Origin: Intoshia linei
Lineage: Eukaryota > Animalia > Orthonectida
Assembly (NCBI GenBank): GCA_001642005.1
Contig: LWCA01000293.1
Location: 1-33,319, forward strand
Reading direction: 5' to 3'
Length of the DNA stretch: 33,319 nt
The number at the start of each line of letters is the position of its first letter. Within the stretch, counting starts at the first letter, position 1. The notes beneath the pieces are model-generated. The model saw nothing but the letters and a program-made list of their open reading frames with translations. It was not told where the DNA came from and searched no databases. Positions 1 to 23,803 of this stretch are shown here, in pieces. Position numbers and translations under genes: made by a program.

Positions 1-386
1 TTGTCATCATTTTAAATATTTTATGCTGTAAAAATAAACTGCTTTACAGTAAAGATAATATTTGAGTAAAGTTACTCTTTAGTTTATGCTAACATATAGA
101 TGCTGTTTATTAAAAAATTCTTATTGAGTTAGAAATAATCGAGAATTTTGAAATTAAAATAGTAAATATCATATTGTCTTATACATGTATGTATATTGTA
201 CTATGTTATATAAAAATAATCACGTCCCGTGATTTAAGGAAACACAAAAATTACAAAAATGAACATACGTTAACAGTTGATGTTATAGGGCATGCAACAA
301 TCAATATTCACTCTTTGAATATGCATATTATAGAATACATATTAACTAATAGTATCTAATTAATATATCATAACCTATTCATTCAG

Positions 387-3300
387 GAAGTAAATTTTTA
401 GTTACATTAATATAAAATTTATACACATTAATGACAAAAAGTATCCAATTTCTGATTAAAGAATTATAACCAATGAAAATAGACAGTAAATTATTTATTT
501 AATTTGTAGGCCTTGCCTATTGTAAATAAATTTGAATAATTCACAAACGACCTCGGAAAATTAGCATTTACATGTTAATAATATTTTTTAGCTTGTAAGA
601 TATTAGTCATCTTAATTTTTGATGGAGTCATTTCGGTTCATGTTATTTTTTTTATTTATCCATGTTTAGTATGTAATTATTTTCCTTTTATATTTAGTCG
701 AAAATATTTCCTATTAAAATAATTATAAAAAATTTACTATTTTAATTTAGACAGTAACGATTAAAACATCAATTTATTTACCTTTCATTTTTTTTTCATT
801 TTTATTTTAAATAGATGGTATTTCAACATAATAGCTTAATTAATAATGTCTAATACAAAAATTTAATAAAACAATAAAGTCGGTAAATTATTACTTACTC
901 ATCAAAATATTTAAAAATTTAAAATGTGTATAATTTTATCTGTTAAAATTATTTAACAATATTTTATAGTTGGTATAATTATGCATAAATATTTGATGAT
1001 AAAACTACAGGCATTATTTTTTTGTATTTTAATTTGTAATTTTTAATATTTAAGATAGTAAATATTTAAAATACATTTAAATGTATTTATGCAAAATATG
1101 CAAAAAAAAAATAAAATAAAAGAATAATAAATAAGAAATAAAAGAATAAAAGAAAAAAAAATAAAAATATAGTGATAATTATATTTGTTATGGATTAACT
1201 ATAATAAATGATATTGATAAATCGGACAAACAACAGTGTTTTTTATGTTTAAAGCTTTTTTCTAATTCTAATTTAAAGCAATTTTTAGCCATTCTAGATC
1301 ATTTTATTACCATAGTTACATATTAAATTTTTTCGAATTTAAGTTTTTTAATTTTTGCCGATACCAAATCGAATTTTATTGAATTAAGGGGTCCCAATAG
1401 AAAAAGGTTAAGAAACCGTGATCTAAGATGTATCGCTCTAACTATACATGACTCAAATTAATGTCGCTTAACTATGTTTGCCATTTTTATTTATTAATTT
1501 TTTACTCAGCTAGTAATGAATACATATATTCTAAAATTTCATTATCTTGTGTATATTGTATTGTTATATTGCAAAATTTTGATTTAATTTCACATATGAT
1601 GCCATAAATGTAATCCAAAACAGTTTGTAATTTACACTATTTTTATTATTAAAAATATCTGTAACACGATATATGATATAAAAATGATAATAATTGTATA
1701 CATACAGTGTATATTGTAAATGTGTATAAATTTAGATGGTACATATTTTGGCGGTATTATAAATATTTTGAATTATTATGTTACATATAAAAGTTAAGAT
1801 TGAACTTAACCAAAGGGAAATTGTGGTTTATCAAACCCTGAAAATTATACATATTTTAGAATTAATATCTATTGCACTATCTATATCTAATAAACATGGT
1901 TTATGTATGATATTAACAGGAAATATACATTTATAATGAAACACAGATGGTAAATTTAAATATTTAAAACTACTCATATTGAACTTTCATCTACTACATA
2001 GCGAGTAAATCCAATATTCAAATATTTTAAACCTTTTTGCCAAGTTTTAAATTTTTTTAGCTTGAAAATATGTTTTACATATTAATTATATAATGTCATT
2101 TATTATTATTTAGAGAGTATATAATGTTATATAATGAATATATGTAAAATTACTGTGAGATGTATTCATTTATGATAATTTCAATAATTATTAGAAAGTA
2201 AATAATAATAAATACATAATAATATCACTATTAAATAAACTCTATTTATATTTGACAATTGTAGGCAGTATTATATTAATTCATCGTATTTAATTTATTA
2301 TTTATATATTCTGTTAATTTAAAGAGGGTACATACAAATTACATACAATTACTTTTAATATTACATGATATACAAATGTAGTATATATAATTATTAACAT
2401 AAATATTTATCAATACATGTAGACGGTTATTTCATTTATTTTTTATAAATGATATACTGAATAGATTTTAATACTCTATTTAGAAATTAATGAAATTGGT
2501 AATTTAAAAATATTTATTTTTATTTAAATTATTTTAAATTACACTAATATTTACCATTTTATCTATCAATTATCTAATTTTATTCTAGAAAGTAAATAAT
2601 AGTCTTTAAAGTTTAAAATATGAAATGATAAAATATTATTTGAATATAACATTTTTTAAATTTAAATTTTTAAAATTTTATTACATTTTGTCAATAAAAT
2701 TATACATTATATTAATTTGCGTTTAGTACAAGAAAAAAAATGTAATTTTGATAAAAATAAATAGACAAACGTATAATATAAATGTTTTTTCAAAGTTCTA
2801 AAAAGATATACAAAAAATCTAATCAGTCAATATTACTAGTGTTCAAAACCAGTTTTTTTCATTTCAGAAAAAAACATAGTTTGTAGTATCATAACCGATT
2901 TATTATATACTTATTATCATTCAAATCGTGATTTTAAAGTTAAAGGAAAAAGAATTTTATGTGGCTAAATAATTACTAAATTCATTAAAAAAAATTTATA
3001 TGCAGAGGCATAAGATAAAATTAATATCTGGTTTATTATATTTAAATAATTCAAATTAATTAAAAAATCGCAGTTTCCCGCTTTACACGAAAAAAATAAA
3101 AATTTAATTTATTGTAACATTTATTGTGTTGAGTAATGTGGACTATACTTACAAGTTTATATATTTATCTTAAGAAATGTGCCCTAAGTCAAAAATAGTA
3201 GATAATAATATAATGAGTGAGTATTTAAATTAAATTAAAGATTTGAATACACCTAGAAGAAAAAAATTGTAATAAAAAAACATTTATAGATATATAGAAT

Positions 3301-6300
3301 AAAAAACGAATAAAGTGTTTTTATAAGTCAAGCTGAATAGACTATTAACGATAAAGCCGTTGAGTTTTGAATGAGAACTTATATTTTCCAAATTATCAAA
3401 CTTTCTATGTCAAAAAAGGATTAAATTAGACTCGTTAGTGCTTGACGCAATTTTATTTTTACTATAGCTATAGCTATAAATTAGCAACAATTTTCTAGTA
3501 TAGTACCGACGCGATATTCTGAAAAAAATTCGGAAACTTACCACAGTGTTAAATTATTGCTATATTGCAATTACAATTATATTCTTATAAGACACTAGGT
3601 TGACTGATGTGATGACTGACAGCACCTAGCTCTGCCGAGGGCCATTTTCATTATACCAAAAAATTTTGCTATTCACTACTATCAACTTTTTAAAGGAGTG
3701 GTTACCGAATTTATTTCAGGTGGAACCGTCATATCACATTACTTTTGACTTTAAAGTGAATTATTCTATCTTAATTTTTTTTGTTAACACATTTACATAA
3801 AGAATTTTAAAAACAATTGTTATTTCATTTTTTTAATTTATTAGACAGAATGTGTGCATAATATTAAAAATTAAATAAAAACAATCCAATCCTAAAATTT
3901 GTCATAACTAGCATAAATTTCAAAAAAAATAAAATTATAAAAACCTATTTTGTCATTTTCAATGTGATAATATGTATTCAGTAACGATTTAATAAATATT
4001 TAAAAATACAAATTATGTATCAATAATTAACGGAATTAGCACTTTATAAACATATTTCATGTGAATTTTACCAATATTGCAAAGGATTATAATAAATATA
4101 AAAATGATAATAACAAAGTTGTATTACTGTTAGTAATTCGTTGTTGTAGTTTTAATTTAAATTTTATACAAAAATATTTTGAAAATGAGAATTTGAGATT
4201 TAAAAATTGCGTAGCAATGAAAAAAATTCCGAAGGAATAAATTATATAGATTTTCACACATATTACTTAATTGGAAATGTGTAGATCGTCAATACACATT
4301 TTTGTTGAAATTGTAGGATCAATATTTACATTTTCAATTTTTATTTTAATCGAAATATTTTGAAAAATAATGGTAGATAATATATTAAAAATTATTTTTC
4401 ACCGGGAATGCGTAGATTTCTGGGGTTGAACTTTTGTATTTATATCAACTGGAATAAGCTTTATCAGACTAATCTTTATTTTTAATTTTCGGACCCTTAA
4501 TTAATTCACATTTTTTGTTTAATATATAATAATTCCAAAGTAATTAATTAGAGTAATTAAAGTTCAGATAATTAGAATTTAAACACATAAAGGTGGGTTA
4601 AAGTAATTAAGATGTGTCAATACTGATAAATTATTTTAAAATCATTGTAAACTATTATATTTTTCAATATAAAATAATACAATAAATAGATAGTAAATAA
4701 AAAATTTTTCAATATTTTGTTTATAATGATTTTAACTAAAATTTTGTAGTGAGTAATACATAAAGGAGTTTAGTACATTATATATAAAGTGTATGTTTTT
4801 AAATATTTTTGCAATTTTATATTTAACATATTATAGCTGGTATTCTTATGTAATGATACTACTTATATAAATGACATCCTATGAAAGGTATAATTTATCG
4901 AGTTGATAAAGAAATATTTTATTGAGAATGGATATGCAATGGAAATTAATATCCCTTTTGAATTATTTTGGAATGTATTGTCTCATCACTTTCTAATGTT
5001 AAAATATTATTAATAATGTTATTATAGTCAGTAAATATAAGTTTCATAATGTAGTTATTTATCATTATTATTAATTATATATTATTGTTTTACATCTTAA
5101 ATAAATGATCTAAATGAAATGGTCAACCAAAATTTATTGTTACTACATCAGTATTTTTTGCTCTATTCTATATATCTATATTAATCATGATGAAATGAAT
5201 ATTTAATATACATTTTAAAATTTAGCTGGTAAATACTTTATGTATACATAATAATTGTATAAGTTACATATAATATTGAAGAACATTTAAAATACATTCA
5301 ATTAAATTTATTCTGAAATGATTTCATATGTTCATATTCATAGAAAGTAATAAATTCCATTATGAAAAGATTTTATTCTTATATAATCTTCACGTAGAGA
5401 GTAATATATATGCAAAATTACAAAATATCAATATAATTTTTTCGATTAATTTTATATTATGATATAATTAAACATTTACAACATCAAAAATAATGTTAAA
5501 AAACTAAAACACTAAAACACTGTAGCCAGTAAATACATATTATGTATAATAATCATTATTTTCCTTATTCTAGATTATTGTATACATTATAACATGTTAT
5601 TATTTAGAACGTAATTATATAAAACATTTGTATTGCTAATCAGCATATTGTGCAATTTACCAGCAATTAAAAAATCAGTATTTAAATAAAAATTAAATAT
5701 TCATTAAAAATTAAACATTAAAATTGATTTTTTTAAATTGAGTAAATATTAATGAATTTAATTAGATTGTAATTTAATTATTTCGTATAAATTAAATTCT
5801 AAATTATAATTTGAAGGTTTTCATAAGATGAAAAACCAAGCTGACTAGAATGAGAAATAACTAAAACAGCAATTACATGTAGATCGAAAATGTATGAAAA
5901 AAATTGAAAATTTCAGTCTCGTGAAATTATATTATAGTATTCAAAATGTCTGCATTTTTTCTAATTTTATTTAATTTTAACTCAAATATTCAAATATATT
6001 TTACTTACAATTAACTACTCGTAAAAAGCTTGTGTTATTAAAATTGTAATAAATGCATATGTATTACTACTAATATATTAGTAGTTGTGACATTTTAATT
6101 TTAATTTGTAGTTAACAAATTAAATTCAAATTAATAATACATGTATTTAAAATCATTCAGTAAGTAATATGTTTTATATTTTAACTTTTTAATAATTTTA
6201 TTATTATTTAATTTAATTTAATTATTTTATTAGGGCAAGTTTTTGAAATTTTTTTAAAAAATTATAAACATGGCCCTAGAGTCTAGGGTGTGAATTTTAG

Positions 6301-9300
6301 TTGTTTTTTTGGAAATTTTATAGATAGGAACGTATAAATTCGCGTATGACAGTTTTATGGCTACACTGAAAAAACTTTTCAAAATTCCAATATATTCGTT
6401 AAATTCCTCAAGTCCCACCAGTCGGCCTAATCCCACGTTTAGAAAACAATGATCTATTTTTTCAATTTTATTGTGGTGAATATAAATTTTAATAAGATTT
6501 TCATTTTTTTTGCAATATTTTCAATTTTTTTGTAACTTTTTAGTAGCTCTAATAATAACCTAGTTATAATTATGTATTGTACTAATCATTTAGCTTGTAA
6601 ATAATTTATTTTATAATAATAGTAGACATCACAGTTACCTATAATATTATTGTACAATTATAAATCTTATATAGACGTTTCCAGTAAATTTTCCGGCTTC
6701 TAGAGAGTTACCATACTTTGCTGACTAAATTGGGTTTAATGCCAAATTAATTTTTTAATATTGTTTCGTTCCATATATTTATACGTTTTATATATATATT
6801 TACATTATAAACAGTAAGTAAATTACACTTCATGTTTAATATAAAATTAATATTTTAAATATGATTTCATAAACTGAAAATAGGTTGTAAAATATATTTC
6901 AATTTTATTTAAACTAATTAATACGAATCGACGGAAATTAGTACATTGGAATTTATAATATGAAATTTTTATACTTTCTACGAGTTTATAATATCATTTT
7001 ATTTCCAAAATACATTTTGCGCTAGATGCGTGATATATAATGGATGTGACATATGTAGTACTTTAAATACTCAATGTATTAATAGTATATTTTATTTATT
7101 AAAAAATTATAGATTGTAATTTTATACTGTATAATTTATATCGTATTTCTTAATTTAATGTCTCTCGCGCCCTATTTTTGTAATTAAAACATTGCGCAAC
7201 CCGGTTACAAAATCCTGCTGTACAGTAATATTTTGCAGTATAAAATTTTTATGCTATAATTACAATTATATAGTATAATTTTATTTAACCGAATAAACTG
7301 AAAAACCACTTTTTTATTATTTCATAAGAAGTGACTTGAAAAATATCACGCTTCGATATAAAAACTCCTATTTTATAATTTTACGTGCCAAAATCCTTAC
7401 ATAACTTATACTAAATTTTACATATATTTTATACAATGTATACTATACATGTATAATTAGAAAGTTGATTATATTGAATATCTTATATTAGTCGGTAATA
7501 TAAAGTGGTTATTGTATTGTGTACTGAGTCTCAAACATTTATAAATTTAAATTTAAAATAATTTAGATGAATGTAATACAATTAAATTGATTCATTATAT
7601 TTTATATTTATTGGAATAATTTTTTATTTTAGTCGGTAATTTCCAATAAATTTTTAAAAAATTTTTTAATAAAAAAAATGTTAAAAATTAAACTTTACAT
7701 TAAATTAATTTCAATTAGGATGTAATTACGCTACAATATACATATATAAATATATGTACTACTGTCTTTTCTCGATTATAAGCAGACCCCTGAAATACAA
7801 ATTTTCAGTGAAATTTTATACTAAATAAAATTTGAATATAAGCGCAGTTTCTGCTTGTATTCGAAAGAAAGAACTTTAAACAAAAAATAGACAACATATC
7901 AATTTATTTTTAAAAATTAACTTTCTTCATACAATACAATGTCTAATTTGAAGTTTTGCTTTCACCATATACAATATGTTGTTTATGCAATTCGTTGAAA
8001 GTAATCAGAGTTTCAAATTTTTTAGAAGCAACAAAAAATTCATTAAGATAAGGTGATTCGGAAGTGTTTTTAATATTTTCAATGTACTTGTAATGATTCA
8101 ATATTTGAAAGTAAGCTTTAATGATCAAATGTTTAAATTTAAAATACGTTTACAATTAAGTTATGTTGATTGTGATTATTGTTGTTATAGTGATTGTTTA
8201 TAAGGTAATAGCTAGATATTAGATATGATAGTGGTGTATGAACACTACAGTACTCATAATTAATGATATCAAGCGGAACCAAATATTCTTTAAGTCCTTC
8301 ACAGACCTCATTTTTTCATTTATAAGTTTCATCTCAAACAAATAGATTTTGAGAATACCCCAATATGTAATTTAATACAAATTTAACGAGTTTTTAAAAT
8401 ATAAAAGCAAACTTTTAGTGTATTTTTTATATTTTTCAAGGTCTGCTTAAAAGTCTGCTTGTTTTTGATTATAAGCATTTTTCCTTCTACTCTCGAATAT
8501 GAAAAGACTTCTTATAATCGAAAAAAGACAGTAGCTTATGATAAAATCATACCTAATTTTTGTAACTTGTTACAAAATAGGGGGTAAATAATATTGATAT
8601 TAACTAAATGTATTATATTTAATAATTATAATGATTTTATAATAATTTCAGCTTGTAATACATAATAATTAATTTTGTTTACAATTATTTAGCATTTACA
8701 TTTTACATCAATTAAATTTTTTAGTTGGTAATAATATATCGATTATTAGCCATTTTCAAATTGAATAATAAATAAGTAAACACAACTAATATACTGTCAT
8801 ATAATTTTAGAAAGTATATTTTTTAATTAATCTAGTTTATAAAACATTATTTTCATGTCTGAAATGATTATATAATCATGAACGCTTAGAAAGTAATTAA
8901 TATTATTAAGTAATAAAGTAAATAATTATAATACTAAATATTTGTACATACTAATAATACTAATTAAAATGAATACTATAATAATTATGTGTAAATACAT
9001 GCATGTATTATTATTAGCTAATTTTATGTATCTGAATACTTGTAAAGTCGTTAAAAGATTGATTTATATTAATAGTGTGTAAATATACATTTTTTTAGAT
9101 AAAAACTTTGTATAACATAGTCATAATAAATTTTAATACAAATAAATACAACATAATTATATTCAGATTGTAAGTTTTTTAATATACATGTATTTAATTG
9201 TTTTGTCTTTATATTGAATTTGTTAATGTGTTTTATTTATATGAAAGATTGTAATCATTTAATACGTTTATTAGATTAGTGTATTACTGTGGTTATTAAC

Positions 9301-12300
9301 TTTTTTGTGTAAAGCACCGTTGAAGGTTTATAATAAAGAAATAAACTCAAGATAATTTTTAACCTAATATATAAAGTGGAATGTTTGGGTAAGTATTTTT
9401 TTGATTTATTTCGAAATTAAATTAAATAATACATTTTTTATAAAGAATTTTAAGACTGGTATTATCATTAAATCTATCGTTCATGTATTTCAAATGAAAG
9501 TGGAGCCTCCACTATTTATTCCGTTATTCATATTTTAACTATTTGCAAAATAATTTTCAAAATTTAATAAAATTTTGCATGTCTTAATTCCCTGATAACT
9601 AAAATAAAATTTCAAAAAATTTACGAGTTCCAGAATTATAAAACTTATGAGTACCACAAACATAACATTTTATATGCTAAAAGTAAAAATAATTTTTATT
9701 GCAGTAAGTTTGGAAATTTTTTTTTCTAGTTAGTGCATGAATACTACTGTAGTTCACTAAAAAACTGTACACATCATATAATATCGATAATGTTATCAAA
9801 ATCAATAATAAATAGTCAGTAAATCATTAATATATTAATTTTATCATATATCATATATGTATGTCATTGAAATTATAATTGTGTTTATGTACAAATTTTC
9901 ACGTCTATCGAAGAACCAAATACAGTCATGCAGTAGAATTGGTGTATTTAAAAAAATATAAATTAACATAATAACCCCATAATAATCAAAGTATATATCC
10001 TTGAAAGTGAAAAAATTTGAAATTTTTAATATAATTCATGGATAAGTAAATATTATCGATATTACCTGAAAAAATGGGCATGTAAATCAATTTTATGATA
10101 GTTTTTATTATTTTAAATAACAAAAAATAAAAATGTACATTGTACAATAATAGTAAATCACACGTTTATTGTAAAAAAAAAACTGATGGGAGGTATTTAT
10201 TTAGCTAAAACACTAAACCTTACAAATAATACATTTTTAATTAGTTGGTAAATTTAATATAATATATTATATTATTTAAAATACATACTATGCAGTTAAT
10301 GTATTGCAGTCAGTTCATTATATTCTCAAATTTTAAGTAGACTCAAAAATAATTGAATAATTATAGTAAATATACAGTTAATTTAATATTAAGTCATTAT
10401 GAGTGTGTTACGAAATTAATTTTGGTTTTATTCTAAAATAATTAAACACTTTTCATTTTTTATATTGATACTCAAATAATATTGAATTATTAATACTATT
10501 AATTTACAAATTACGATTAATAGTTTCTAATAATTATTAGTAAACCAAATATGTTTTCCTCTGAAATTAATATTGGATAGAAACCACTATATGTCTATGT
10601 ATGTAATATAGAAAATACTAAGATCTGACTGTAAATAAATGGTTCAGTTTGTTTATATTGATTTCCAGATGGTATATTAATTTTGATGAAAACATTACAT
10701 TATATTTTTAATATAAATTTTTGAATAAAATAATATTAACAATAATAATGATATTATAGATCGTAAATTTATATTACACTTTACAGATTATGGATAATAA
10801 ATTATTATAGATCTATCAATAACTATTGCCTATTAGTTTGTAATAAATATTTAAACTTTAAAAGTCAGAATTTTTATTTTGTTAATAAAGTAAATAATGC
10901 CAATTTTCAGTGTGTAATTGAATAGTTATCATATTAATATATTATTATTAGTATTATTATAAAATAATGTTAATAAATTCTAAAAAATATGAAGGTATTA
11001 CCATTTTTATGTGTAGTTGGTATTAAATTTAAAATTAAAAAATATTAGTGATATATATAACAATTGGATACCTTTTTATAAAGTATATTTGGTAAATAAA
11101 GGGATGCAAAGTAACCATAGACTTTGGATATATTGAATAATTATAATTCACATTTTTATTTTACCAAAAAAATAAATTCACGTTGAAAATCTAGCTTAAA
11201 AATCCTACTATTGACTATTATCAATCCTTTAAAGGAGTGGTTCCCAAACTTGTTTCAGGTGGAACCGTCATATCACATTACATTTTACTTTAAAGTGAAT
11301 TATTATATTTTAATTTTGTTTGGTTAACATTTGCGTAAAGAATTTTAAAGACATTGTTATCACATTTTTTTAATTTATTTTTTTTTATATCAACTGGAAT
11401 AAGATTTATCAGAATAATATTTTTGTTTATTTTTCTGACTGTTAATTAGTTCACATTTTTTGATTGAAATTTTTTTGTGGTTTAACAGGATACAACTGTA
11501 CGACCTGTAAATTTTTTAAATTCTACTGCTATTTTCATTAAAAAAAGGGTCATTTGTGGTTTTGGCCCTAAAGATAAATTTTTTTTTAATTAAATTTATA
11601 ATAATATTTATGATTTTAAAATCCGTATCAGAGTATATATTTTTTTAATTTCTCGAACTCGTTTGATTTTCAAAAAAAATAAGAATTTGGCTTTTTGACC
11701 ATGTAAGATGTGAGTTACGGAGGTTGAAATTTATTTTGCTAACACCAGAAAAAAATTTCATTGAAATTTGGACTTTATAAAATTCTAACACAGGTAGTTA
11801 CTGAAATAAACGATGACATACACAGACAAACAAAGCATATTATATAAGTAATAATTATATTTATGAATGCTATACCTTGTTTCATTGAAACAGTATTTAT
11901 TAAATTGGAATTGTTTTATGATAAAAATTTTTAGTTGGTACAATAAATTTGTTTTTTATATGTAAAATAATAAATATGTTAATATATTAATGTATAAATA
12001 TGTTAGTCAGTAATGATTTAATATTATTATAATAAATATTATTATTAGTGTATATGTATATGTAGGTTACAGGCAAAATTCAAATTATACACGTTTTATT
12101 TGTTAAAGCAAGTATATTAAAACATTAAGCGTTGATAAATATTGGGAATATTATGAAAGATTGATAAAATTACAAAATAATGTAAATGAACCCAGAATAA
12201 AAAATGATTGGAACATTTTGAACTTATTTTTTAATCTATTATTATATTATATTTTATGTTAAATTAATTAATTAGGTCAAATTTTCAAATTTGAATTATT

Positions 12301-15300
12301 ATTCACGTTGCTTGTTAAAATTTGAAAATTGCCTGTAACATATATACTTCAGCATCATTGATATTAATAATAAATCATTTATATATATCATAATTTAGAA
12401 GGTAAAATTGATATTTTAATATAACGTAATGTGTTGTTAATTATGTTTACATTCACCAATTTAGCTTGTAATATATTTATGTTTAATTAATGGAAGCATA
12501 TACTTATTAAATATATTAATTTATGCAATATTAAGCAATTAAACAATATTTAAATTTTAAATAGACATTTTTAAATAATATTTATTCAACAATTTACAAC
12601 AATATTAATTACATTAAATTTCGAAAAAATATGTCATTTCTTAGTTTGTAAATTTATGCATTCATTTATAATTTTAATTTATAAATGCATGTAAATAATT
12701 ATTAAAAATATGAAATACACGTATATTTCCTTATAGATTGTAAATTTGAAGATAATAAAAAATTTCATTAATTTTTCCATAATTTAAATTTAAAATTTTA
12801 ACAATATATTGACACTTTATTTAAGATGGTATGTGATTTAGAATAATTTTATTTTTATTTGTGGATTCATTTTTTTAAATAATTGGCTTGATAGGAAGTA
12901 TGTTTTATATTATTTATGAATTATTAATCATAATTTATGATATATCAATTATGAACGTACAATATACTATTAAATTAATTTAATTTATTTTTTCAATAAC
13001 CGAATATACTTTATTAATAACTTAATACAATTGTCAAAAAATACGAATTTCTTATAATTAGATGGTATTACATTGTATTAATTGTATTGAGTAATATAAT
13101 TTTATATTCAAACTATTTTATTTAGATATATATATATATGTATTTATACAATTAATTATTTCAGACAGTAATTTTTATAAAAATGAAAATAAATAATAAT
13201 ATAAATCATACATAACAAAAAATGTGAGATAAAAAAATTTTTATTATTTTATATATATTTATTAGAAAGTAAAAATTTAAACTTCAATTTTCGACTTATC
13301 TTATAAATTAATAATATAATTAATAATATTAATCATGTCATTAATATATTAATACTATCAATCAATATTGATTAAATAAAAATTTTTTTTAAAATATAGT
13401 CAGTAAAAAATACACTAAACTACGTTTTAAATCAGCGGTTCATAAATGCAAGTTCAAGGTCACTAAAAATCATTATTAATAATTATTAATTACATATTCA
13501 CAGAAAAAAATTAAAAATTTTAACATTGAACCAAGAACGTACATATTTTAGTAATTATATTAAGTGGCAGTGAAAAAATTAATGTATAACTATGATTTCA
13601 AATTGCGATAATTATCGATTTGTAATGTAAAAAATTTTGAGAACTCTTGTTTTAAACAATGATTATGATAATGATAGTGTGTATAATGCAAAATTAAATA
13701 GAATGTAAATAATTTCATAAATAATAGTGTACAATTGTATATTATAATTTTGAATAAAAATAAATATTTTTATCGCAATAACTGATATGTAAATCGATGA
13801 TAAACAAATATTACCTTTTATTTAGCTTTTAACATACCAAATGTATATTAACAAAGTATATTCTTACGTGTATATTTAGTGTGTAATTTTAATTCAATTA
13901 ATACATGTGTATCATTGAAATATGTAATACATTTTGAACTCGTAAATATATTTCTTTAATTTACATAATATTATAGCCAGTAAATATTTACAACAGATAA
14001 TACAGTTTCCGGTAAAGTAGGTGGCGCGCCACCCATTTTAACTTTATATAACTACTATTGAATTAGTGAATGGAATGATAATGCGAATATAAATATACAT
14101 AATATTTATTATTTTATGCAATATACAATGTATTGCAATAAATATGTAAAATGTATATTATAAATGTAGTAGGTATTAATATATGATTTAAAATTTAAAA
14201 AATGTAATATATATTTATTTTTTTTTATATTCACGCTAGCATGTATATTTATTTTTACAATTCAGTAGACACTAGAAAAGTGATCACACGCAACGATTAG
14301 TCATTTAGTACAGGAACCAATACCATACTACAGAGTTTTATAAAACTTAAATCTTAAAAATTCTTCTTCTACAAATTCTTCTGGAACAAATTTTAAAATC
14401 ATTAACATTTTCAAACATTTTAACCTCAGAAATTTACACTATCATTGTCAACACCTCAAATTACCCCTTTGTTTGAAAATGAAAATAAATAATCAAAGAA
14501 TTATATATAACATAAATTCTGGGATAATTTTTAAAATCATAAACATTATCATAAATCGCAACCTCAAAAACTAACAGTTTCGCGATTAAAGCCTTAGATA
14601 ACACTTTTTTTAAAAAATGAAAAGTCTAAGAATTTTTTAAAAATTGCAGCTCATAGTTATTTTCAGTAATCATGATAAAAAAATAAAAAATTTAACTATG
14701 ATTTAATTTTTTTAAGGGTGTATAGTAATTTCTATAGTCAAAACAGTCATAAAGTCAAAAATCTGCCTTAAATAGTTATTCAAAAAGTTGGTTCTCTGCA
14801 GAGCTAGCTACTGTTTGAACCAATTTTTTAATACATAACAGTTTATCTGATTCTAACTAATGTGTAATAAATGCATCTAATTAATATTTCATTGGTTGTA
14901 GAAAGGTTTCTATAACAATGTGTCATTTTCGAATCTACTGAATTAATAAAAAAATTAATTTATTTTTTTAAAAAGGAAAATTTGGGACATCATTATTTGG
15001 GATTGTGATATCATCTATGGGATTAAATGTCATTATAAGCACATTTTAGATCGTAATTATATTCTGTACAAAAATTTATCAATTACCAAAATTTATATTA
15101 CATTGAACAGATATAAATAATATTAAAAAACAATAATTATAATTAATAATAAATGTTATGATTGTATTAATAACAAGTACTGATCATTATAAATTTAGAA
15201 AGTAAAAATTAAATTTTTACAAAATTATTAAAATAGAATATGTAAAAAATTACATTGATACAAACAATTACATTATAGTATGTAATACATATATTTATTA

Positions 15301-17980
15301 ATTTAATACATACAATATTATTTACTCTTTTTATTTATAATAAACGTGTAATTGACATGTATCATTTAGTAAGTAAAAATAAATTTTAGTTAATAATTAT
15401 TTGGTGTTTATTATAATAAACACTTTCATCCCCTATGTGGGACCTGGGAATTTTCAAAGTTATATGAAAATTATGAATATAATTAACACTGCATATAAGA
15501 GCAAAAGCCACAGTATCAAGACCACAGGAAACAGAGACTTCAGGGCTCAATAAAATTGATCAATTTCATAACTGTTTTGTGTGAATAAATTAAAATAAAT
15601 TAAATTTAAATTATTAAGTTTATATCCGCTCAAATGTGACTAAGGCTGTTTGGTAATATGCACCTTTTTCTATTTTTTAATGACTTATTTTTAATTTCTC
15701 TATTCTCTAAAACTTTATTTTATGTGTAAATCTCACATTTCTACTTAATTAGATGGTAATACTTTTTTCTTATACTTCATGTATACGTTTATGATTTAAT
15801 ACCTGTCGTACAGATTTCGACAACTTGGGCGATTAAAATTTTTTGGTTTCACGTTTAATAAATATTGTACAATGTATATGTTGACATGTTTTATTCAATA
15901 TTTAAAATTGATAAATATATATTATAAATAATAGATAATAATATAATTAAATTACTATAATCCATAAAAGAAAAATAAAAAATTTTGCTTATTTTTAATT
16001 ATTAGAGTCCGTTATAAATTTTTGGGGAGACGGATAGAATGTGATCAAAAAACAGAATTTTTTAATTTAGGGGGCGATAATTCAAAAAAGGTTGAGAATC
16101 CTTGATATAATGTAATAGAATAACATAATACATGCCCATATTGTATATATTACAGATGGTAACATTATATTAATGCATATGCAAAACATACTTTATAATA
16201 TAAACTTTATATTAAATATTCAAAAATGTGGCCCAAAGAATTTTTTGATATATACTAATGGCCCACGAGATGCAAAAGGTTGTCGACTCTTGATGCAAAG
16301 TTTATATTATAATATGATTAATTATACATACTTTATGTACATCTCTATTACTATGTGGAATCCACAGTGTGGATGAGAAAATAAATTACTACATGTAATT
16401 TTTAAATAAATAGACAGTAAATTATAAATAAATACTTTATACAAAATCTATAATAGGGATGATAACTAAATATAAAAATATTAACCGATTAATTAATTTT
16501 GACATATTATTAAATTTGAAAGTATGAAAATATTTCGAAAGTCTTGATTTATAAACGAAAAACTAAAAAAATCGTATGTGGAAAATATATGTTCAAAAAA
16601 TAAATCTTAAAGACCCTCATTACATTCCAGTAAAAAAGTAAACCCCTAAAAACCCTAATCATATTTTGGTTCAAAAAATAAACCTTAAAAGCCTTCATTA
16701 TATTTTGGTACAAAATTTTCTATCTTTATTTAATTTTTAATCTTCTTTAAAATTCAATGGCTGTTTTGATTTTTTAAGAAAAGGGTAATTTTTGGTTTTT
16801 GCCAAGATATACCTTTTTAAAATAACTAATTTATGTTAATATTCATAATTTTAAAATAGACATTAGAGAGTATATTTTTTTAATTTCTAGGACTCGTTTG
16901 ATTTTAAAAAAAGGATAATGTGGGTTTTTAAGGGGAAAATATATTTTTGGTTGTAATTTTCTAAAATGTGCATTGATCTTACTTTCTCATTAAAAAAATC
17001 TGACTTGGAATTTTTGTATGTTAATTTCTAGAGCTCTTAGTTATTGAAATAAACGATAACACACACTCAGGCAAACACACAAAAAAAAAGTTTTATATAC
17101 GTCAGGATATGTATTGCTTTTAATTAATTATTACTGAGGTTGAAATTTTGAAAAGATATTTTATATTGATTTTGTAACGAGAATTTACATTTTCATGTAA
17201 ATATATAACCAGTTATCAACAGGTTAACGATTTCGAGTTATTTATTATCCCTACTACTACGCTAACATGATGCATAATTTATATCTTAATAAAATAATCT
17301 TAGAAGGTAACAAAAAATGAATAATTATAATTAATTACAATATAACGTATGGTAATCAGTGATGGGACGTATTATTTGTGAATAATAATTTGTGGAATAA
17401 GTACATTGTGTCATATAAATAAACCAACTCTATATATGATATGGTTTACGAAATTATGCATAAATAATATACAATCCCATAAGTAATTTTCATTAACTAT
17501 TAATGTACATTTTTACCACAAGACTGACACTATTGACATCACTCATTTATTGTAGATACACATTCAAATTTATCTCAAATAATATAATTCAATTAAAGTT
17601 GGTATTACTTAATTATTTCATTTGATGGTGTACTACACTGTAGACATGATTGATCTATCATCATTCATCATATTAGTCATTATTATTATGATTTTAAAAT
17701 TACAGTAGAATTAAACATAGTACGTAATTTATATATTTATTATTGTGAAATTCATAATATGTGATATTGTATAGTACAATGTATAATGTTATACCATAAA
17801 TAATACATGAAGTAATTTGTACAGTGTAAAAATAAAACTTAAATAAAAAATATTTAGTGGAAGGTAATTATATATATAATAATCATGTAAAATATTACTT
17901 ATTCTTAATATATTAGAACATTATTATTTAAAGTTCAAAGAGCAAATAAAAAATAAAATAATTTTTTGATTTTAGACTAA
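387..17980 (+). CDS. Putative extreme micro-exon gene (about 82 x 3-nt exons plus 6/15-nt exons, all phase 1), 5'-partial; product unknown, about 93 aa visible
   Basis: Exons read as AG|exon|GT, start coordinate and sequence: 387 GAA, 483 ACA, 592 CTT, 670 TAT, 751 ACA, 815 ATG, 880 TCG, 970 TTG, 1055 ATA, 1510 CTA, 1624 TTT, 1736 ATG, 1947 ATG, 2002 CGA, 2114 AGA, 2195 AAA, 2265 GCA, 2325 AGG, 2423 ACG, 2484 AAATTAATGAAATTG, 2589 AAA, 2765 ACAAAC, 2880 TTT, 4690 ATA, 4750 TGA, 4837 CTG, 5028 TCA, 5226 CTG, 5344 AAA, 5398 AGA, 5526 CCA, 5608 AAC, 5766 ATT, 6161 TAA, 6594 CTT, 6815 TAA, 6884 GTT, 7113 ATT, 7492 TCG, 7567 ATGAAT, 7633 TCG, 7719 GAT, 8652 CTT, 8725 TTG, 8811 AAA, 8890 AAA, 9076 TGT, 9167 ATT, 9248 ATT, 9816 TCA, 10245 TTG, 10310 TCA, 10669 ATG, 10760 ATC, 10837 TTT, 10911 TGT, 11017 TTG, 11935 TTG, 12007 TCA, 12109 CAA, 12399 AAG, 12465 CTT, 12645 TTT, 12737 ATT, 12826 ATG, 12895 GAA, 13062 ATG, 13165 ACA, 13266 AAA, 13400 TCA, 13702 AAT, 13880 TGT, 13977 CCA, 14170 TAG, 14240 CAT, 15050 ATC, 15199 AAA, 15279 TAT, 15370 TAA, 15753 ATG, 16156 ATG, 16414 ACA, 17304 AAG, 17599 TTG, 17721 TAC, (17775 TACAAT optional), 17858 TGGAAG, terminal exon 17976 AC-TAA. 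Phase-1 translation: NTLYNVVDTIYDAKKSKDEINEIENKLYMTVTEKTKHLTLSYFDEFGSFEKMYYFIVNDLLFVVTKAFYYGNDKIKLSIAYQILNDDKVVLED*. Individual exons may be false or missed. Confidence 0.8.
1234..1420. mobile_element. Degenerate hAT-like MITE
   Basis: Starts CAGTGTTTTT and ends GGGGTCCC...AAAAAGGTTAAGAAACCGTG, resembling hAT (Charlie-like) MITE termini. It sits in the gap between micro-exons 1055 and 1510. Confidence 0.4.
3665..4520 (+). repeat. Dispersed repeat copy A (long form), hAT-MITE-like end GAGTGGTTACCGAA
   Basis: 3665-3840 and about 4440-4520 align with about 11200-11465 (shared TAAAGGAGTGGTT..TTTCAGGTGGAACCGTCATATCACATTAC and TATATCAACTGGAATAAG). Confidence 0.75.
7762..8531. mobile_element. Non-autonomous Tc1/mariner-superfamily (pogo-like) element
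   Basis: 21-bp TIRs CTGTCTTTTCTCGATTATAAG / CTTATAATCGAAAAAAGACAG (20/21 match), flanked by TA at 7760-7761 and 8532-8533. Confidence 0.85.
11200..11465 (+). repeat. Dispersed repeat copy B (short form of 3665-4520)
   Basis: Direct similarity to 3665-3840 joined to about 4440-4520. Contains GAGTGGTTCCCAAACTTGTTT, a hAT-like terminus. Confidence 0.75.
11540..11845 (+). repeat. Dispersed repeat family 2, copy 1
   Basis: Shares AGAGTATATATTTTTTTAATTTCT..ACTCGTTTGATTTT and TGAAATAAACGAT.ACA.ACAC..ACAAAC with 16780-17090. A reverse-complement copy lies at 18610-18790. Confidence 0.7.
13433..13649. mobile_element. Degenerate hAT-like MITE
   Basis: Termini CAGCGGTTCATAAA ... TTTGAGAACTCTTG form imperfect inverted repeats. 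Lies between micro-exons 13400 and 13702. Confidence 0.45.
16780..17090 (+). repeat. Dispersed repeat family 2, copy 2
   Basis: Similarity to 11540-11845. Confidence 0.7.
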
Positions 17981-18609
17981 TGGACCAGCCAAGATTAAAT
18001 ATTTTTTAAATTGTTATAGTTTTTTAATTAAATATATATATTTTTTATCTTTATACACAAAACAAACCTCTGAGTGTATACGTTAATTTTTATCACGTCT
18101 CAATGAACAATTTAAAATTTCTGAATTTTATTCAGATAGTACAATTTATGTATTATAGTATACAAATATATAATCCTAACAGGTGTCAAAACTGGATAAT
18201 TTAGAGTTATAATTAAATTCAATACTGAAAAATATTATTTTATAAATCTAAAAATATATGTGCATGGTTAACTAGAGAGACATTCTAAAAAAATGTATAA
18301 CCACGGTTTATAGTGTTAAAATAACTCAAAAATAAATTATTTAACTAAGAACTAGGGTTGCAAATTGAAATTTACTCCATAAATTTTAACGTTAAATTTT
18401 TTTTAAAATTCCAAAACTAAATTAATCTTCATAATTTATTTAAACATATTTACATTATTAGTTAAAATAGTCCTTACTTCAATAATTATAATTATAGCAT
18501 ATTATAATATGCTATGCAATATTTGTTTGTCTTTTGTTTATTTCAATAACTACCAGTCTTAAAATTATCTATATTTTATAAAGTCCAAATTTCAAATATA
18601 GTTTTTTCC

Positions 18610-18790
18610 AGGGTGTTAGCAAAATACATTTCAACCTCCCAAACCCACATACACACATCTTACGGGTCAAAAACCCAAATTTTCTTTTATTTTGAAAATC
18701 AAACGGCAATGGGCAATTAAAAAAATATACGCTGATATTGATTTTAAAATCATAAATATTATCATAAATTTAAAAAAACCATATCTTTAG
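18610..18790 (-). repeat. Dispersed repeat family 2, copy 3 (inverted)
   Basis: ACATCTTACGGGTCAAAAACCCAAATT..TTTTGAAAATCAAACG and GATTTTAAAATCATAAATATTAT are reverse complements of segments at 11600-11715. Confidence 0.65.
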
Positions 18791-18881: not shown

Positions 18882-20453
18882 TTAATTTTTCCAACGAACA
18901 TCTTTATTAGAAATGGTATTATTTGCGAAATCTAAAGCATAAGATCCTTTTCTAAGTCTAGGTAACAATTTAACAATAGATTGCCGATCTCGCCAATCCA
19001 AATATATTTGTATGATAATTTCAAAACATTCAAGCCTCTCAGCAACTTCTAGCCTAGATTGAACATTGGGAATCAATGAACAAAACCTCATAATAACTGT
19101 AGATGGAGCATTAACCTCAAAAAGAGTGAAAGCAACATCCTCAATAGTAATGACATTATCATTGATAAATTTATTAAAAATGGATTTTTTTTTAAACATT
19201 TTTTCAATTTCATCATATTCACTCCTATGTAAATGTAATTTGATAGTAACCCAACAATTTTGTTGTTTAGATATTTTAAAAATATTGGCTAATGAAGAAG
19301 CTGATCCAGTAAAATTCTGAATATTACATGTATATAAAGAATCTAAAACGGAAGAATGATCATTAAATAAAACTTTGGATATTTTCTCAGGATCATTTTG
19401 ATTCAAAGTGTGATGTTGCCATTTGACTAGATTATGGTGTTGGTTAATCATATTTAAGAGTAAATAATCATCAGTTTGAGGTATAGAAATGGAATTGTTG
19501 AGATTTGTGAAACATTTAAATTCCTTGTTGGTGGGTTCCACTGAAGACATGGAAGAAACTGAAATATTTGAAGAGAGTTTGGACGTTATTTTTAAAAACG
19601 CCACATTACTGTACGAACCCGTCTTAAGATTGAAATTATCATTTTTATCCAGAGTGTGCATTTTAGAAAAAGAGGAAATTTGATCTTTTATAGTTAAAAT
19701 AGTGTTAATGGCATCATCTGAAATGGTATACGAGCTATTATTTTTCATTAAAGCAGGATTGAGGAATTGGTAAAAATACATGATAAACGCATCTCGCCTT
19801 CTTCCGATAAGAATATAAAAATTGAACAAATCTACATAATTTTCCATTGAATCAAGATGTGAAATGTAAAGATTAATCGTAATTTGATTTCGTTTGATTA
19901 AATGAACAAATATTTCAAATCGAAAAATTTTTTTTAAATGTAGAATAACCGTTAAAATTGAATCACCACAACCCAAGGTACAAACATCCTCCAACAATGC
20001 TAAAGCGTCTTCTTTTGTTGTGACGCTTATTAGCATTGAATCAACGTATGCATTTTCAAACGAATCGTAGTCTAAATTGTATTTACTAGCTACTAAATCT
20101 CTAGCAATTTTTCGTAAATTTGCGTCAACTGAAGTGGATGGTGTGAGTCTAGATTTATATGCTATGGATGACAAATTTCTGCCGTGTTTAATCGTTTTTT
20201 TTACATTTATAAAATTACTCTTATTTGTTTCGGTATTTTGAATCTTTTTTTGAGTACTATTTTTAGGTTGTATTATTAAAACTTTTTCGTTCAATGATTT
20301 TGGTACCTGTGGAACTTTTAGTGATTTTTTAGGCTGTTTTTCTATGACTGTGTTTCCGTTCCAATCAATCAATTCATTTTTTATATTGACATCAAACATG
20401 TTTGCGTCGTTGCATTTTTGCGCAGATGAAGCGTTCCAATAATCATCAGACAT
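18882..20453 (-). CDS. VIPAS39: VPS33B-interacting protein / spermatogenesis-defective 39 homolog, intronless, about 523 aa
   Basis: 536-aa ORF, with the likely ATG at 20453 (MSDDYWNASS, compare the VIPAS39 N-terminal EYWNSS). Central KEDALALLEDVCTLGCGDSILTVILHLKK resembles the SPE-39 motif, and the family-typical C-terminus is ...WKN. Recognised from memory. Confidence 0.85.
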   Translation of the reverse strand: MSDDYWNASSAQKCNDANMFDVNIKNELIDWNGNTVIEKQPKKSLKVPQVPKSLNEKVLIIQPKNSTQKKIQNTETNKSNFINVKKTIKHGRNLSSIAYKSRLTPSTSVDANLRKIARDLVASKYNLDYDSFENAYVDSMLISVTTKEDALALLEDVCTLGCGDSILTVILHLKKIFRFEIFVHLIKRNQITINLYISHLDSMENYVDLFNFYILIGRRRDAFIMYFYQFLNPALMKNNSSYTISDDAINTILTIKDQISSFSKMHTLDKNDNFNLKTGSYSNVAFLKITSKLSSNISVSSMSSVEPTNKEFKCFTNLNNSISIPQTDDYLLLNMINQHHNLVKWQHHTLNQNDPEKISKVLFNDHSSVLDSLYTCNIQNFTGSASSLANIFKISKQQNCWVTIKLHLHRSEYDEIEKMFKKKSIFNKFINDNVITIEDVAFTLFEVNAPSTVIMRFCSLIPNVQSRLEVAERLECFEIIIQIYLDWRDRQSIVKLLPRLRKGSYALDFANNTISNKDVRWKN

Positions 20454-20612: not shown

Positions 20613-23610
20613 ATGGCTGATAATCTAAGAAAAACGTGGGATAATGAAGAATATACCAACAAGGCTTTAGAAAGAATTGCTAGAGATGGTATTAGTGATA
20701 TGGGATATAAAGAAGCTAAAAAGGAAAATCTTACTCGCAGAGATTACAAAATTGATATTGATTCTAAAATTGGTTCATCTGTTGTTATTAGCAAAGCTGG
20801 TTGGTCTGATCAGTTGAGTGGGTATATTTTATTTTTTTTTATTATTTACATGAAAAAATATTTTTATTTCCCTTCAAGGGTTAATTTCAAATTTCTTGTC
20901 TAATTTATGTTGTTTAGTTATTGAAAAATGTCCGCTTTAGTGAATAATTTCGTTAGTTTTTATTTTTTTTTTTTGATAAATTTCACATTACTCAGATGAA
21001 AAATTTTGTATTATACCAATTCACAGAAAGGAGCGTGGGAGATGAGTTTTTCAATTTATCGTATACTAAAGAAATTTATATCAGCTCGTGATACGAGGTG
21101 ATACACCCAAACTTTGACAATATTAATTTAAATAGGGGAAAATGGCCATGTTTGAATAAATTTTTGTATTATTTTTTAATTACCGCATGACATAGGAAAT
21201 GATAATTAGTAGTGTATAATATTAACGTTTTTTGTTTAGATATTATTGCAACGTTTGTGACTGTGTTATCAAAGATTCTATCAATTTTTTTGATCATATT
21301 AATGGAATTAAACGTAATTATATTATATTTATATTGCTCATTAATTATATGCATTTTTTTTCACACTTTCTATCATTTTATAATTAATTCAGTGATTTAA
21401 AATATCAGAAGGGCTTATAAATAGATACAGAGTAGTCGAAAGCTTGTATGTAATTATATCAGTTTTGTATTATGTTTATGTTTATCCACTTGGAGTATTG
21501 CATTGGATGTATTTGTTATCTCCAAACTTTCCATACCCGTAATTATTTCCATAGGGTTGAAAATATTAGCTTCGATTATAATGGAACCCAAAAAAACCCA
21601 TTATTGTAAAAAAATGTTATTACGATAACATCTTACAATTTGAACCGTAAAGATTTCATTGTTGAGAGTAGGGATTGGAATTTTGATCTATCGCAGCCAA
21701 TTCAGAATGAGTATCTAAAATAATAGACGCTAGTTTTACAATTTCTGTAGGTAGCCACACAGTAAAAACTCTGATACTATGGAAATAAAATTATTGTGAA
21801 ATTGGCCCTCATTTTTTTAAATTGTGAATTTAAAATATGAATATTTTTTAAAAAAAATTTTTAATATCAACTATTTTGATAATCAAATTTAAACTGACAA
21901 GTTCAGACCGTCACATTTTTAAAAACTAAAATTTTGGGTCGATTTTTAAAATAATCTAATTATGGGTCTTACTAAGCAGTGAATCACAGTAAAAAAATTT
22001 CTGAATCAGTCATTTTGCCATTTCATTCATTATGAAGAATTTTCTTTAATGTTAAATTTTTTCAATATCCATCATTCAAAAATCCACTTTTACCCAACTT
22101 TATGGAAAAATCCAATTTTACCAACCCTTAAAGAAAAAATCCCTTTTTGCCAAACCTTAAGGATTTTTTTTACTGTGATTCACTAAGATTTACTGTGGAG
22201 TTTACCTTAAGGTCAGATTGGTTTGGTAAAATGGGATTTTTTCTTTAAGGGTTGGTAAAATTGGATTTTTCCTTAAGGTTTGACAAAAGGGAATTTTTTC
22301 CTTAAGGGTTGGTAAAATTGGATTTTTTTATAAAGTTTGTTAAAAGTGGATTTTTGAATGATGGATTATGAAAAAATTTAAAATTAAAAAAAATTATTCA
22401 TAATGACTGATTCAGAAAATGACATTTTCAAGATATAAATTACAAACTACCCCTTATTTAAAAAAATTTAAAAACTGAGTCTTAGAAATTAAAAATCTCA
22501 ATGCTAATATTTATTTTCAGTTAACACATTCAAAAAATTGAAGTATCACGTAATTAAACCTTTACCATCAAAAAAGAATTTTACATTTTACTCTTCTTTT
22601 TTACCATCAAAGTGGAAAGTTATGAGACTACATCAGCCTTGAAAAGCTGTATTATAAATTTTGTTTTGTACAATTCAAAGACTGATTTAGCACATATATT
22701 CAACTGTATGTAAATAAAGATTTCAAATTAATCATTTTTTTAGACCAAAAAAATATGGGAATGTCTATGAAAATTGAACGATCATCTTTGTCAAAAGTTA
22801 AAGAAAGAATTGCAGCAAATAAACGCAAATTATTACAGAAAGTACCCAAGTATGATTTTGAAAAACAAATAGAAGATGTCAGAAAACATGAAACTATCAA
22901 GCGAGACGCAAAACGTACATATTTAAAGTTTCAATTAATTTTGTGTTTAAAGTGTGACGTAGATTAGGCCCGTGCTAGATGGAAATTATAGGCCCCATAT
23001 TAATTTATTTAAAATGGAATCTCTATACTTGCTTAATGGATCGTTCATTATCTAAAAATTAAAAATAACTAATCGGACTGTTAATATAACATTCTATTAT
23101 ACGATAATTTTGGTATACTTGAGAAATTTTTCAACATTACCTAAAATTAAATTAAAATTTTAGGTCCGGTCAATACGGCCTCGGTATATAACGCTGTTGA
23201 TAATAAAAAAAAATTTGGTCATGGAACTTATAGTAAAATCAACTTTAATGTTTATAAAATAAAGATATATTTACTAAGAATTTTTCACGCATCACACGCC
23301 CCAGGGTTCACAAATCGACTTGAAAATGCTTGAAATAAAAATGGTACATACTGTATTTGACGTTTAATCGACATTAAATGTTAATAAAAACCTTGAATAA
23401 ATTTAAATGTCCTCAAAATTATTTTATTTGATATTGATTATATTCCAAAATTTAGGAGATAAACGTTTCAAAAAACGCCAACAACAGAGTGAAAAGAAAA
23501 AGAAAGAAGAAAAAGTTGTTCAACCCGATTCCACTGAAGCTGATGAAATTTCAAAAGTTATGGGATTTTCATTTTTTGGTGGAAAAAAAACACAAATAGG
23601 AAGAAACTAA
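20613..23610 (+). CDS. ZMAT2: Zinc finger matrin-type protein 2 (Snu23; U4/U6.U5 tri-snRNP/B complex), 4 exons: 20613-20821, 21240-21313, 22744-22914, 23456-23610
   Basis: Contains [22 protein letters not shown], the zinc finger [41 protein letters not shown], and C-terminal VMGFSFFGG. All GT-AG junctions keep the frame. Confidence 0.95.
21977..22420. repeat. Foldback / long inverted repeat with about 30-bp subrepeats, in ZMAT2 intron 2
   Basis: About 22025-22160 is the reverse complement of about 22220-22405 (AAAAATCCAATTTTACCAACCCTTAA vs TTAAGGGTTGGTAAAATTGGATTTTT). A second inverted pair is AGTGAATCACAGTAAAAAAA (about 21977) / TTTTTTTACTGTGATTCACT (about 22164-22183). Confidence 0.85.
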
Positions 23611-23803
23611 AAAACCACCAATACAATCGAAAATTATTCATGTCTATTAAATTTGTAAATATAAAATTGATAATTCTGAATTTTAAATGTTGTTAATAAA
23701 TAAATTTTCAATATAAAACACTTCCTTACTTTTAATCTATAATCTTAATGTAGTATAATTTTTTCGTTTTAAATTTTATATAAATTCAATTTTTTAATTT
23801 AAA

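Follow-up and report, generated by a model that had tools for sequence, protein, structure and literature searches.

Contig LWCA01000293.1 of the orthonectid Intoshia linei (assembly GCA_001642005.1) was analysed at its full length of 33,319 nucleotides (nt), referred to here as the window. Its + strand carries, from position 387 to about position 18000, what is probably the 3′ portion of a protein-coding gene in which almost every codon is split by a phase-1 intron. As predicted from the sequence, the coding part would consist of about 75-80 exons that are each exactly three bases long and one of six bases. The introns between them would be of the ordinary GT-AG spliceosomal kind (GTAAWT ... 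TAG), with lengths from 51 to about 130 nt that are exceeded only where repeats have been inserted. Each exon would complete one codon (bases 2 and 3) and begin the following one (base 1), and exons joined in genomic order would form an open frame of about 80 codons, ending just past the last micro-exon. An earlier first-pass annotation, made from the letters alone, had proposed joined micro-exons with a single open frame. The frame that it chose, in which one base of an exon is read with two bases of the next, was found to be open here and poor in stops in nine further arrays, but its 93-residue peptide was overstated.

Number and spacing of the three-base exons

Strict exons were defined as AG-NNN-GTAA, in which an acceptor AG and a GTAA donor stand three bases apart. 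The + strand of the window holds 63 such sites, 62 of them within 1-18000. Over the same interval and strand, each of the other spacings from 0 to 12 bases between AG and GTAA gave only 0-5 sites, and spacing 3 on the minus strand gave two. The flanks of the 62 sites are unrelated to one another, so the sites are not copies of one repeat unit. Exons were also called in 1-18200 with a position-weight splice model that covers the 20 nt before the AG and the 6 nt after the GT and was trained only on sites from other contigs. At a score of at least 0 the model called 79 three-base exons, whereas the control spacings averaged about 4.5 each and the minus strand gave six; at a score of at least -5 it called 97, against about 16 per control spacing. 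Raising the threshold to 1 left 64-65 exons, and 2-5 false exons are expected across the range of 64-79 calls. When good acceptor-donor pairs were sorted by exon length from 0 to 40, 39 fell at length 3 and no more than six at any other length.

Because the control spacings imply about 4-5 false exons among the 79 calls and about 16 among the 97, the true number is about 75-80 three-base exons, together with one 6-nt exon, rather than 93. About 10-15 residues of the 93-residue peptide therefore came from doubtful exons, as the first-pass annotation had itself cautioned in allowing that some exons might be chance hits; the extra exons that it placed in the repeat-rich gap 2592-4689 (at 2880, 3218, 3849 and 4285) score below 0. 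The candidate that it excluded at 7461 (AAA, followed by a GTTGAT donor) would indeed create the stop T|AA; the site is weak (score -2.9), which makes the exclusion defensible. Across the exons 53 different triplets are used, and their GC content is 28% compared with 20% for the region, which indicates that the exons hold varied information and not a splicing consensus.

Splice-site character

Acceptors have T at position -3 in 72% of cases, C in 16%, A in 11% and G in 1%, and G falls to 2-7% in the 20 nt upstream, against a background of 12%. Donors read GTAA, followed by A or T and then mostly by T (GTAAWT). Within 20 nt upstream of the acceptor, AG dinucleotides occur at 0.0065-0.0084 per position against 0.035 in the background, a 4-5-fold depletion that has recovered by 40-60 nt. 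Judged by its sequence, this AG-poor stretch is the AG exclusion zone expected between the branch point and the 3′ splice site. The branch-point-like motif TTAAT or TAAT is about 2-fold enriched at -10 to -20. In the window, distances between successive sites stop sharply at a minimum of 51 nt and are most often 60-100 nt; introns of Intoshia linei have a published median length of 57 bp (PMC6543705). The site pairs are real and strand-specific, and they bear the hallmarks of functional 3′ splice sites.

Reading frame of the joined exons

Phase 1 of the first-pass annotation joins the last base of one exon to the first two of the next, which corresponds to intron phase 1 and to exon phase 2 in the general feature format (GFF). 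The number of stops in this phase was compared with that obtained after shuffling the order of the exons, a null that retains all composition driven by the splice sites. Joined in genomic order, the 62 strict exons contain 4, 5 and 0 stops in the three frames, phase 1 being open over 61 codons; shuffled orders gave a mean of about 4 stops in phase 1 (3.9-4.2) and none in 0.3-0.5% of shuffles (p 0.003-0.005). Phase 1 also held no stop in the model calls with scores of at least 1 (64-65 exons, p 0.004-0.009), and a single stop in those with scores of at least 0 (79 exons, p 0.02-0.03) and of at least -2 (89 exons, p 0.01). The sole in-frame stop of the 79-exon set vanishes if a weak exon at 12826 is real. 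The open phase-1 frame thus holds on strict and model-called exon sets alike, with p 0.003-0.03 across them. The phase-0 stops that had been listed (TGA at 4750, TAA at 6161, 6815 and 15370, TAG at 14170) are all present, while the statement that phase 2 stops within 8 codons depends on the exon list then in use, since the first such stop in the strict set falls at codon 17.

The 6-nt exon, TGGAAG at 17858-17863 (+), has the best combined splice score of the window (7.7) and keeps the frame. It is the only convincing one of five 6-nt candidates, and including all five gives two in-frame stops, compared with one in the 79-exon set. Longer in-phase exons were sought within the window, and only chance-level candidates were found.

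Stop avoidance in sister arrays

Genome-wide searches covered the assembly of 41,603,068 bases in 3520 contigs. Three-site pattern searches returned 26, 32 and 26 matches, against a total of 3-4 (1-3 per strand) for a reversed-pattern control, and at least 30 contigs carry such arrays. Nine further array contigs were sampled from these, exons were called with leave-one-contig-out models, and the ten arrays were pooled to give 273 exons. At the one-base/two-base junction the pooled arrays have 3 stops against 13.3 expected (p 6e-5), and the nine arrays without the window have 3 against 9.3 (p 0.003). The two-base/one-base junction has 19 stops against 22.2 expected, a difference that is not significant, and the whole triplets include 21. 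When each exon was paired instead with the next but one, 10 stops were found against 13.3 by the same shuffle; since true neighbours give only 3, the avoidance is specific to them. Contig C207 contributes two of the three stops that remain; there the 'triplets' concerned are the first bases of ordinary 96-99-nt cysteine-rich exons, and without the window and C207 there is 1 stop against 7.5 expected (p 7e-4).

In the DNA and in the pre-mRNA alike, adjacent triplets are separated by at least 51 nt. The avoidance can therefore concern nothing but the joined RNA, and this points to splicing in genomic order followed by translation. Overall, the evidence from the frame is good but not overwhelming. 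More likely than not, Intoshia linei has a class of protein genes that has so far gone unseen, spread over at least 30 contigs, with a phase-1 intron in almost every codon and three-base exons.

Two further features of the sister arrays were observed. The three-site patterns match forward strands of contigs far more often than reverse strands (23/3, 25/7 and 18/8); orientation should be arbitrary, and the excess may stem from the way in which the pattern search works or the assembly was oriented. On C207 (13001-23000) there is a conventional + strand gene with 96-99-nt phase 1-1 exons, for example at 13377-13475, 13891-13989, 18262-18360 and 18577-18672, each of which encodes a Cys-rich CxxCxxC repeat with weak Pfam matches to Giardia VSP. 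Clusters of 3-nt exons follow these exons on the same strand at 19209-19486 and 22964-23249, and micro-exon runs may also be part of otherwise conventional genes.

Ends of the predicted gene

The scan of positions 1-386 for a first exon gave no candidate, in agreement with the earlier remark that no start codon is visible; it looked for open exons that begin with ATG, measure at least 31-40 nt and end, in the required phase, at a scored donor. A lead came from a sister array on contig C2509, where a 52-nt ATG-initiated hydrophobic exon at 62393-62444 ends after codon base 1 with a GTAT donor. It lies about 100 nt past the stop of a Listerin-like gene and is separated by 61 nt from the first micro-exon. 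By its sequence it is a candidate signal-peptide first exon of a micro-exon gene; in such AT-rich DNA, hydrophobic, signal-peptide-like exons with an ATG are met by chance about once in every 3.7 kb for each phase. The Listerin-like gene, which has sub-threshold Pfam matches to UBC_like and RING-type domains, has its final conventional exon ending at about 62290. The idea that the C2509 array is the missing half of the upstream RING finger was rejected, as that half was found in a conventional exon with its stop at about 62290.

At the other end, the candidate terminal exon chosen by the first-pass annotation (17976-18020, +) has a ttttag acceptor, an AC that would complete GAC (Asp), a TAA at 17978-17980 and an ATTAAA at 17994. 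The acceptor and the AC-TAA at 17976-17980 are present as described, but the choice of this exon is ambiguous, four acceptors (17917, 17934, 17976 and 18020) scoring at least 2. Read in frame, those at 17917, 17934 and 17976 each lead to a stop within 1-17 codons. Because DNA of 20% GC would be expected to give an early stop from any of the acceptors, ending on a stop carries no weight. Two parts of contig C767, on its minus strand, match the segment 17892-18200 at 76-81% identity, and no other contig does. As this segment includes the candidate terminal exon and the 3′ end, the likeness could reflect the conserved 3′ end of a related gene.

Proposed mode of splicing

The introns would be recognised by intron definition, as suits a genome whose introns are about 57 nt long, and would be removed singly and in succession, probably 5′ to 3′ during transcription, because U1 at the donor and U2AF at the acceptor can hardly fit together on a 3-nt exon. 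Once its upstream intron was gone, a triplet would join the longer 5′ exon, and its donor would then be an ordinary one. The product would be translated, and the first exon, possibly with a signal peptide as at the C2509 locus, would lie beyond the start of the contig.

Predicted product and the case for an untranslated transcript

The first base of each exon, which would be codon base 2, is T in 41% of cases and would thus give hydrophobic residues, and the last base, which would be codon base 1, is G in 20% and would give V, A, D, E and G. Cys codons are missing from all 248 junction codons of nine pooled arrays, compared with 2.3% Cys in four long open reading frames (ORFs). In this frame Cys can be encoded only across a junction whose second exon begins with GT or GC, and G stands at the first exon base in 10% of cases. 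Cys is perhaps absent because so few exons begin with G and because GT at that place would mimic a second donor, and the three-base architecture may restrict the residues that can be encoded.

Several observations weigh against a translated product. Codon usage, compared with the 3141 codons of the four long ORFs, gave a z of 1.6 (p 0.05 over shuffles), and the control junction frame gave a z of 1.4. The peptide's protein-like look, to which the first-pass annotation had appealed, is weak evidence, because its make-up (rich in I, F, V and K) comes largely from base composition and splice-site constraints, that is, from AT-richness and G at the last exon base. Similarity among the ten array peptides is not convincing, the best match having a z of 3.3 over 13 residues. 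No first exon was found in 1-386, neither a start codon nor a promoter is visible there, and the array begins 387 nt from the end of the contig; the candidate first exon on C2509 has a chance probability of about 0.06 in its interval. The open frame helped to pick the window, so that the window's own p value is inflated, and the pooled p weakens to about 0.015 when skip-one pairing (9-10 stops) serves as the null.

Many of these observations also suit an explanation in which the triplets are spliced and remain untranslated, as part of a non-coding RNA, an untranslated region or a host transcript that serves its introns or splicing, with exons at their minimum size. Splice-site hallmarks would be equally strong in such a transcript, the base composition of the triplets is near background, and the failure to find a start codon or first exon in 1-386, the marginal codon-usage test and the unrelated array peptides are all as it would have them. 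It is nevertheless unlikely, since an untranslated RNA gives no reason for stops to be avoided, and they are avoided in one junction frame and between true neighbours only, both with and without the window. Moreover, scans of the whole window with Rfam (gathering thresholds) and for tRNAs gave zero matches, and the introns have no common sequence except dispersed repeats. A snoRNA or miRNA host gene was considered and set aside, as these empty scans do not support it.

Other explanations of the site pairs

A second alternative is that the sites are recursive-splicing ratchet points in one very long intron, the real exons lying off the contig to the left. Ratchet points in long introns of Drosophila were reportedly described by Burnette in 2005 and by Duff in 2015. 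Such points read AG|GTAAGT, with zero nt between the two signals, and leave nothing in the RNA. The array resembles them in that an acceptor followed by a donor is repeated along a long stretch without conventional exons and stepwise removal is implied; the contig, moreover, starts inside or just before the array. Spacing 0, however, is not enriched (4 sites, against 62 at spacing 3), and three bases between the signals would leave a triplet in the RNA at each step, which amounts to the micro-exon reading itself. The pieces, at 51-130 nt, already have the genome's normal intron size, so that subdivision would be unneeded. Ratcheting also leaves the frame-specific stop avoidance unexplained, and no conventional + strand exon lies between the array and the minus-strand gene at 18882. 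Taken together, these points make recursive splicing very unlikely.

A motif unrelated to splicing, such as a DNA or RNA binding motif, tandem mobile-element joints with 3-bp target duplications, or a product of chance or assembly, is highly improbable, as it would account only for the bare recurrence of a 9-nt motif and is opposed by a more than 10-fold enrichment over all control spacings and over the other strand, by the AG-free zone, the T or C at -3 and the length floor between sites, by adjacent triplets that are not target-site duplications (13 of 263 identical against 8.6 expected), by inter-site segments without common termini or sequence, and by the same architecture on at least 30 contigs against 1-3 control matches per strand.

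Comparison with known micro-exon systems

The micro-exon genes (MEGs) of schistosomes, which DeMarco and colleagues reportedly described in 2010 as having about a dozen micro-exons of 6-36 nt in multiples of three, are the closest in kind to the predicted genes of Intoshia linei. MEGs typically have a conventional signal-peptide first exon, are missed by standard gene finders and diversify via exon skipping. As in MEGs, coding sequence in Intoshia linei would lie mostly in runs of very short symmetric exons with ordinary introns between them. A candidate for a signal-peptide first exon occurs at one sister locus (C2509), at a chance probability of about 0.06. Unlike those of MEGs, the exons are almost all 3 nt long, with about 80 in a row and nearly every codon split. 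Skip-one joins, moreover, carry stops near the chance level (10 against 13.3 at random, with 3 between true neighbours), so that tolerated skipping of the schistosome kind is unsupported; combinatorial exon skipping as a source of protein variation likewise gains no support from these counts.

Aphid bicycle genes contain 5-25 microexons and average about 17 exons in all; their internal exons are nearly all of phase 2, and CYC (Cys-Tyr-Cys) motifs define them (Korgaonkar et al. 2020, 10.1101/2020.10.28.359562; Stern and Han 2022, PMC9168663). They are highly divergent, were found by gene structure rather than by sequence and are putative parasite effectors, and the megacycle gene has 118 exons for 2092 amino acids (aa), or about 53 nt per exon (PMC9168663). 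The array shares with bicycle and megacycle genes the many small internal exons, the long introns and, in its predicted frame, the uniform exon phase 2. It differs from them in its 3-nt exons and in the exclusion of paired CYC motifs, none of the 248 junction codons encoding Cys; and bicycle genes belong to hemipteran insects, whereas the host here is an orthonectid.

Isolated microexons of 3-27 nt occur in animal and plant genes (PMC4317164, PMC8831610, PMC8632122), with single 3-nt microexons known in animals (PMC8632122) and ones of at most 15 nt in plants (PMC8831610). They show that a spliceosome is able to include a 3-nt exon, and aligners and annotators routinely miss them. Such microexons stand singly among normal exons, whereas here dozens would follow one another with no normal exon between. 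Many of them are also specific to neurons and rely on an upstream enhancer of the UGC type; in the pooled arrays TGC is depleted within 25 nt upstream of the acceptors (11 of 273 sites against about 36 expected), and dependence on such an enhancer was rejected on this ground. Full-text searches of a library of papers found none tying orthonectids or Intoshia to micro-exons and none on runs of 3-nt exons.

If the proposed class of genes is real, it would be the most fragmented nuclear gene architecture known, and it would set a new lower limit of gene splitting, with about 80 consecutive 3-nt exons where previously only isolated ones had been found. The spliceosome would have to remove dozens of introns three bases apart in strict order, which raises the questions of how a donor and an acceptor so close together are recognised and of what sets the order of removal. 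Such genes would escape gene finders, spliced aligners and transcript-to-genome mapping, so that part of the orthonectid 'gene loss' could be an annotation blind spot and gene counts and lists of missing genes could be biased, perhaps in other fast-evolving parasites as well. After schistosome MEGs and aphid bicycle genes, the class would also be the third instance, independent of the others and more extreme, of parasite genes made up of micro-exons in a single phase. Some of its members may, in parallel with those two systems, encode secreted parasite proteins.

Layout of the array

The whole array occupies 387-17863 (+), with TAG or CAG acceptors and GTAA or GTAT donors, and its predicted exons fall into five sub-arrays on the + strand. 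Sub-array A (387-2591) has 19 called exons, starting at 387, 483, 592, 670, 751, 815, 880, 970, 1055, 1510, 1624, 1947, 2002, 2114, 2195, 2265, 2325, 2423 and 2589. The 17 called exons of sub-array B (4690-7721) start at 4690, 4750, 4837, 5028, 5226, 5344, 5398, 5526, 5608, 5766, 6161, 6594, 6815, 7113, 7492, 7633 and 7719. Sub-array C (8581-11019) follows with 15, at 8581, 8652, 8725, 8811, 8890, 9076, 9167, 9248, 9816, 10245, 10669, 10760, 10837, 10911 and 11017, and sub-array D (11935-14242) with 16, at 11935, 12007, 12399, 12465, 12645, 12737, 12895, 13062, 13165, 13266, 13400, 13702, 13880, 13977, 14170 and 14240. Calls in sub-array E (15050-17723) start at 15050, 15199, 15279, 15370, 15753, 16156, 16414, 16867, 17304, 17599 and 17721; the one at 16867 is weak, lies inside a dispersed repeat (16730-17123) and is doubtful.

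Every long intron holds dispersed repeats, and these interrupt none of the strict, GTAA-donor exons. Because the long gaps are filled by repeats found on many other contigs, the basic layout is one of short introns, some of which were later enlarged by insertions that spared all strict exons. The 452-nt intron between the exons at 1055 and 1510 contains a short dispersed repeat (1156-1430) with at least 40 matches elsewhere in the genome at 73-86% identity. The longest intron, 2098 nt at 2592-4689 (+), includes the repeat fragments 3659-3842 and 4433-4520, which are found again at 11198-11465. A non-coding dispersed repeat in two blocks (7745-8094 and 8250-8539, together 7745-8539) accounts for the 859-nt intron between 7719 and 8581; the roughly 155 nt that separate its blocks are lacking in other copies. 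As the assembly has dozens of copies of it at 80-95% identity, this repeat appears to have been recently active. Repeat fragments at 11198-11696, related to 3659-3842, 4433-4520 and 16746-16929, lie inside the 915-nt intron between 11017 and 11935, and another repeat (14379-14701) lies inside the 807-nt intron between 14240 and 15050. Further dispersed repeats stand within sub-array D (12057-12346) and, as mentioned, within sub-array E.

A search of the genome for a paralogue or haplotig of the array returned dispersed repeats only. Recent tandem duplication was rejected as the origin of the array, as self-BLAST of 1-18200 yielded only fragments of dispersed repeats, and a target-site-duplication (introner) origin was rejected on the number of identical adjacent triplets given above.

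Contig start and neighbouring genes

GC content is 16-24% across 1-18000 and 22-29% further on, and the first 18 kb contain no ORF of at least 80 aa on either strand. At least six other contigs (C1847, C3073, C819, C856, C1091 and C2217) carry copies of positions 1-98 at 92-98% identity, and this repeat is probably the cause of an assembly break inside or just before the gene. On its 3′ side the array is adjoined by the minus-strand gene at 18882-20453. Pfam searches of the neighbouring ORFs gave weak matches only. A conventional gene at 20613-23610 encodes a C2H2 zinc-finger protein that resembles ZMAT2, with a weak Pfam match to zf-met; by eye, it appears to have a GTAT donor after exon 1 and a TTTTTTAG acceptor before exon 3. 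Just downstream, at 23798-23988, there is a second, partial copy of its N-terminal coding exon, the residues of which resemble those of 20613-20780; from this likeness it is a putative duplicated exon or pseudogene fragment. Near the end of the contig, overlapping + strand ORFs in three frames at 32114-33200, with a faint Pfam match to DUF4371 (E 0.06), look like a frameshifted, decayed transposase-type gene.

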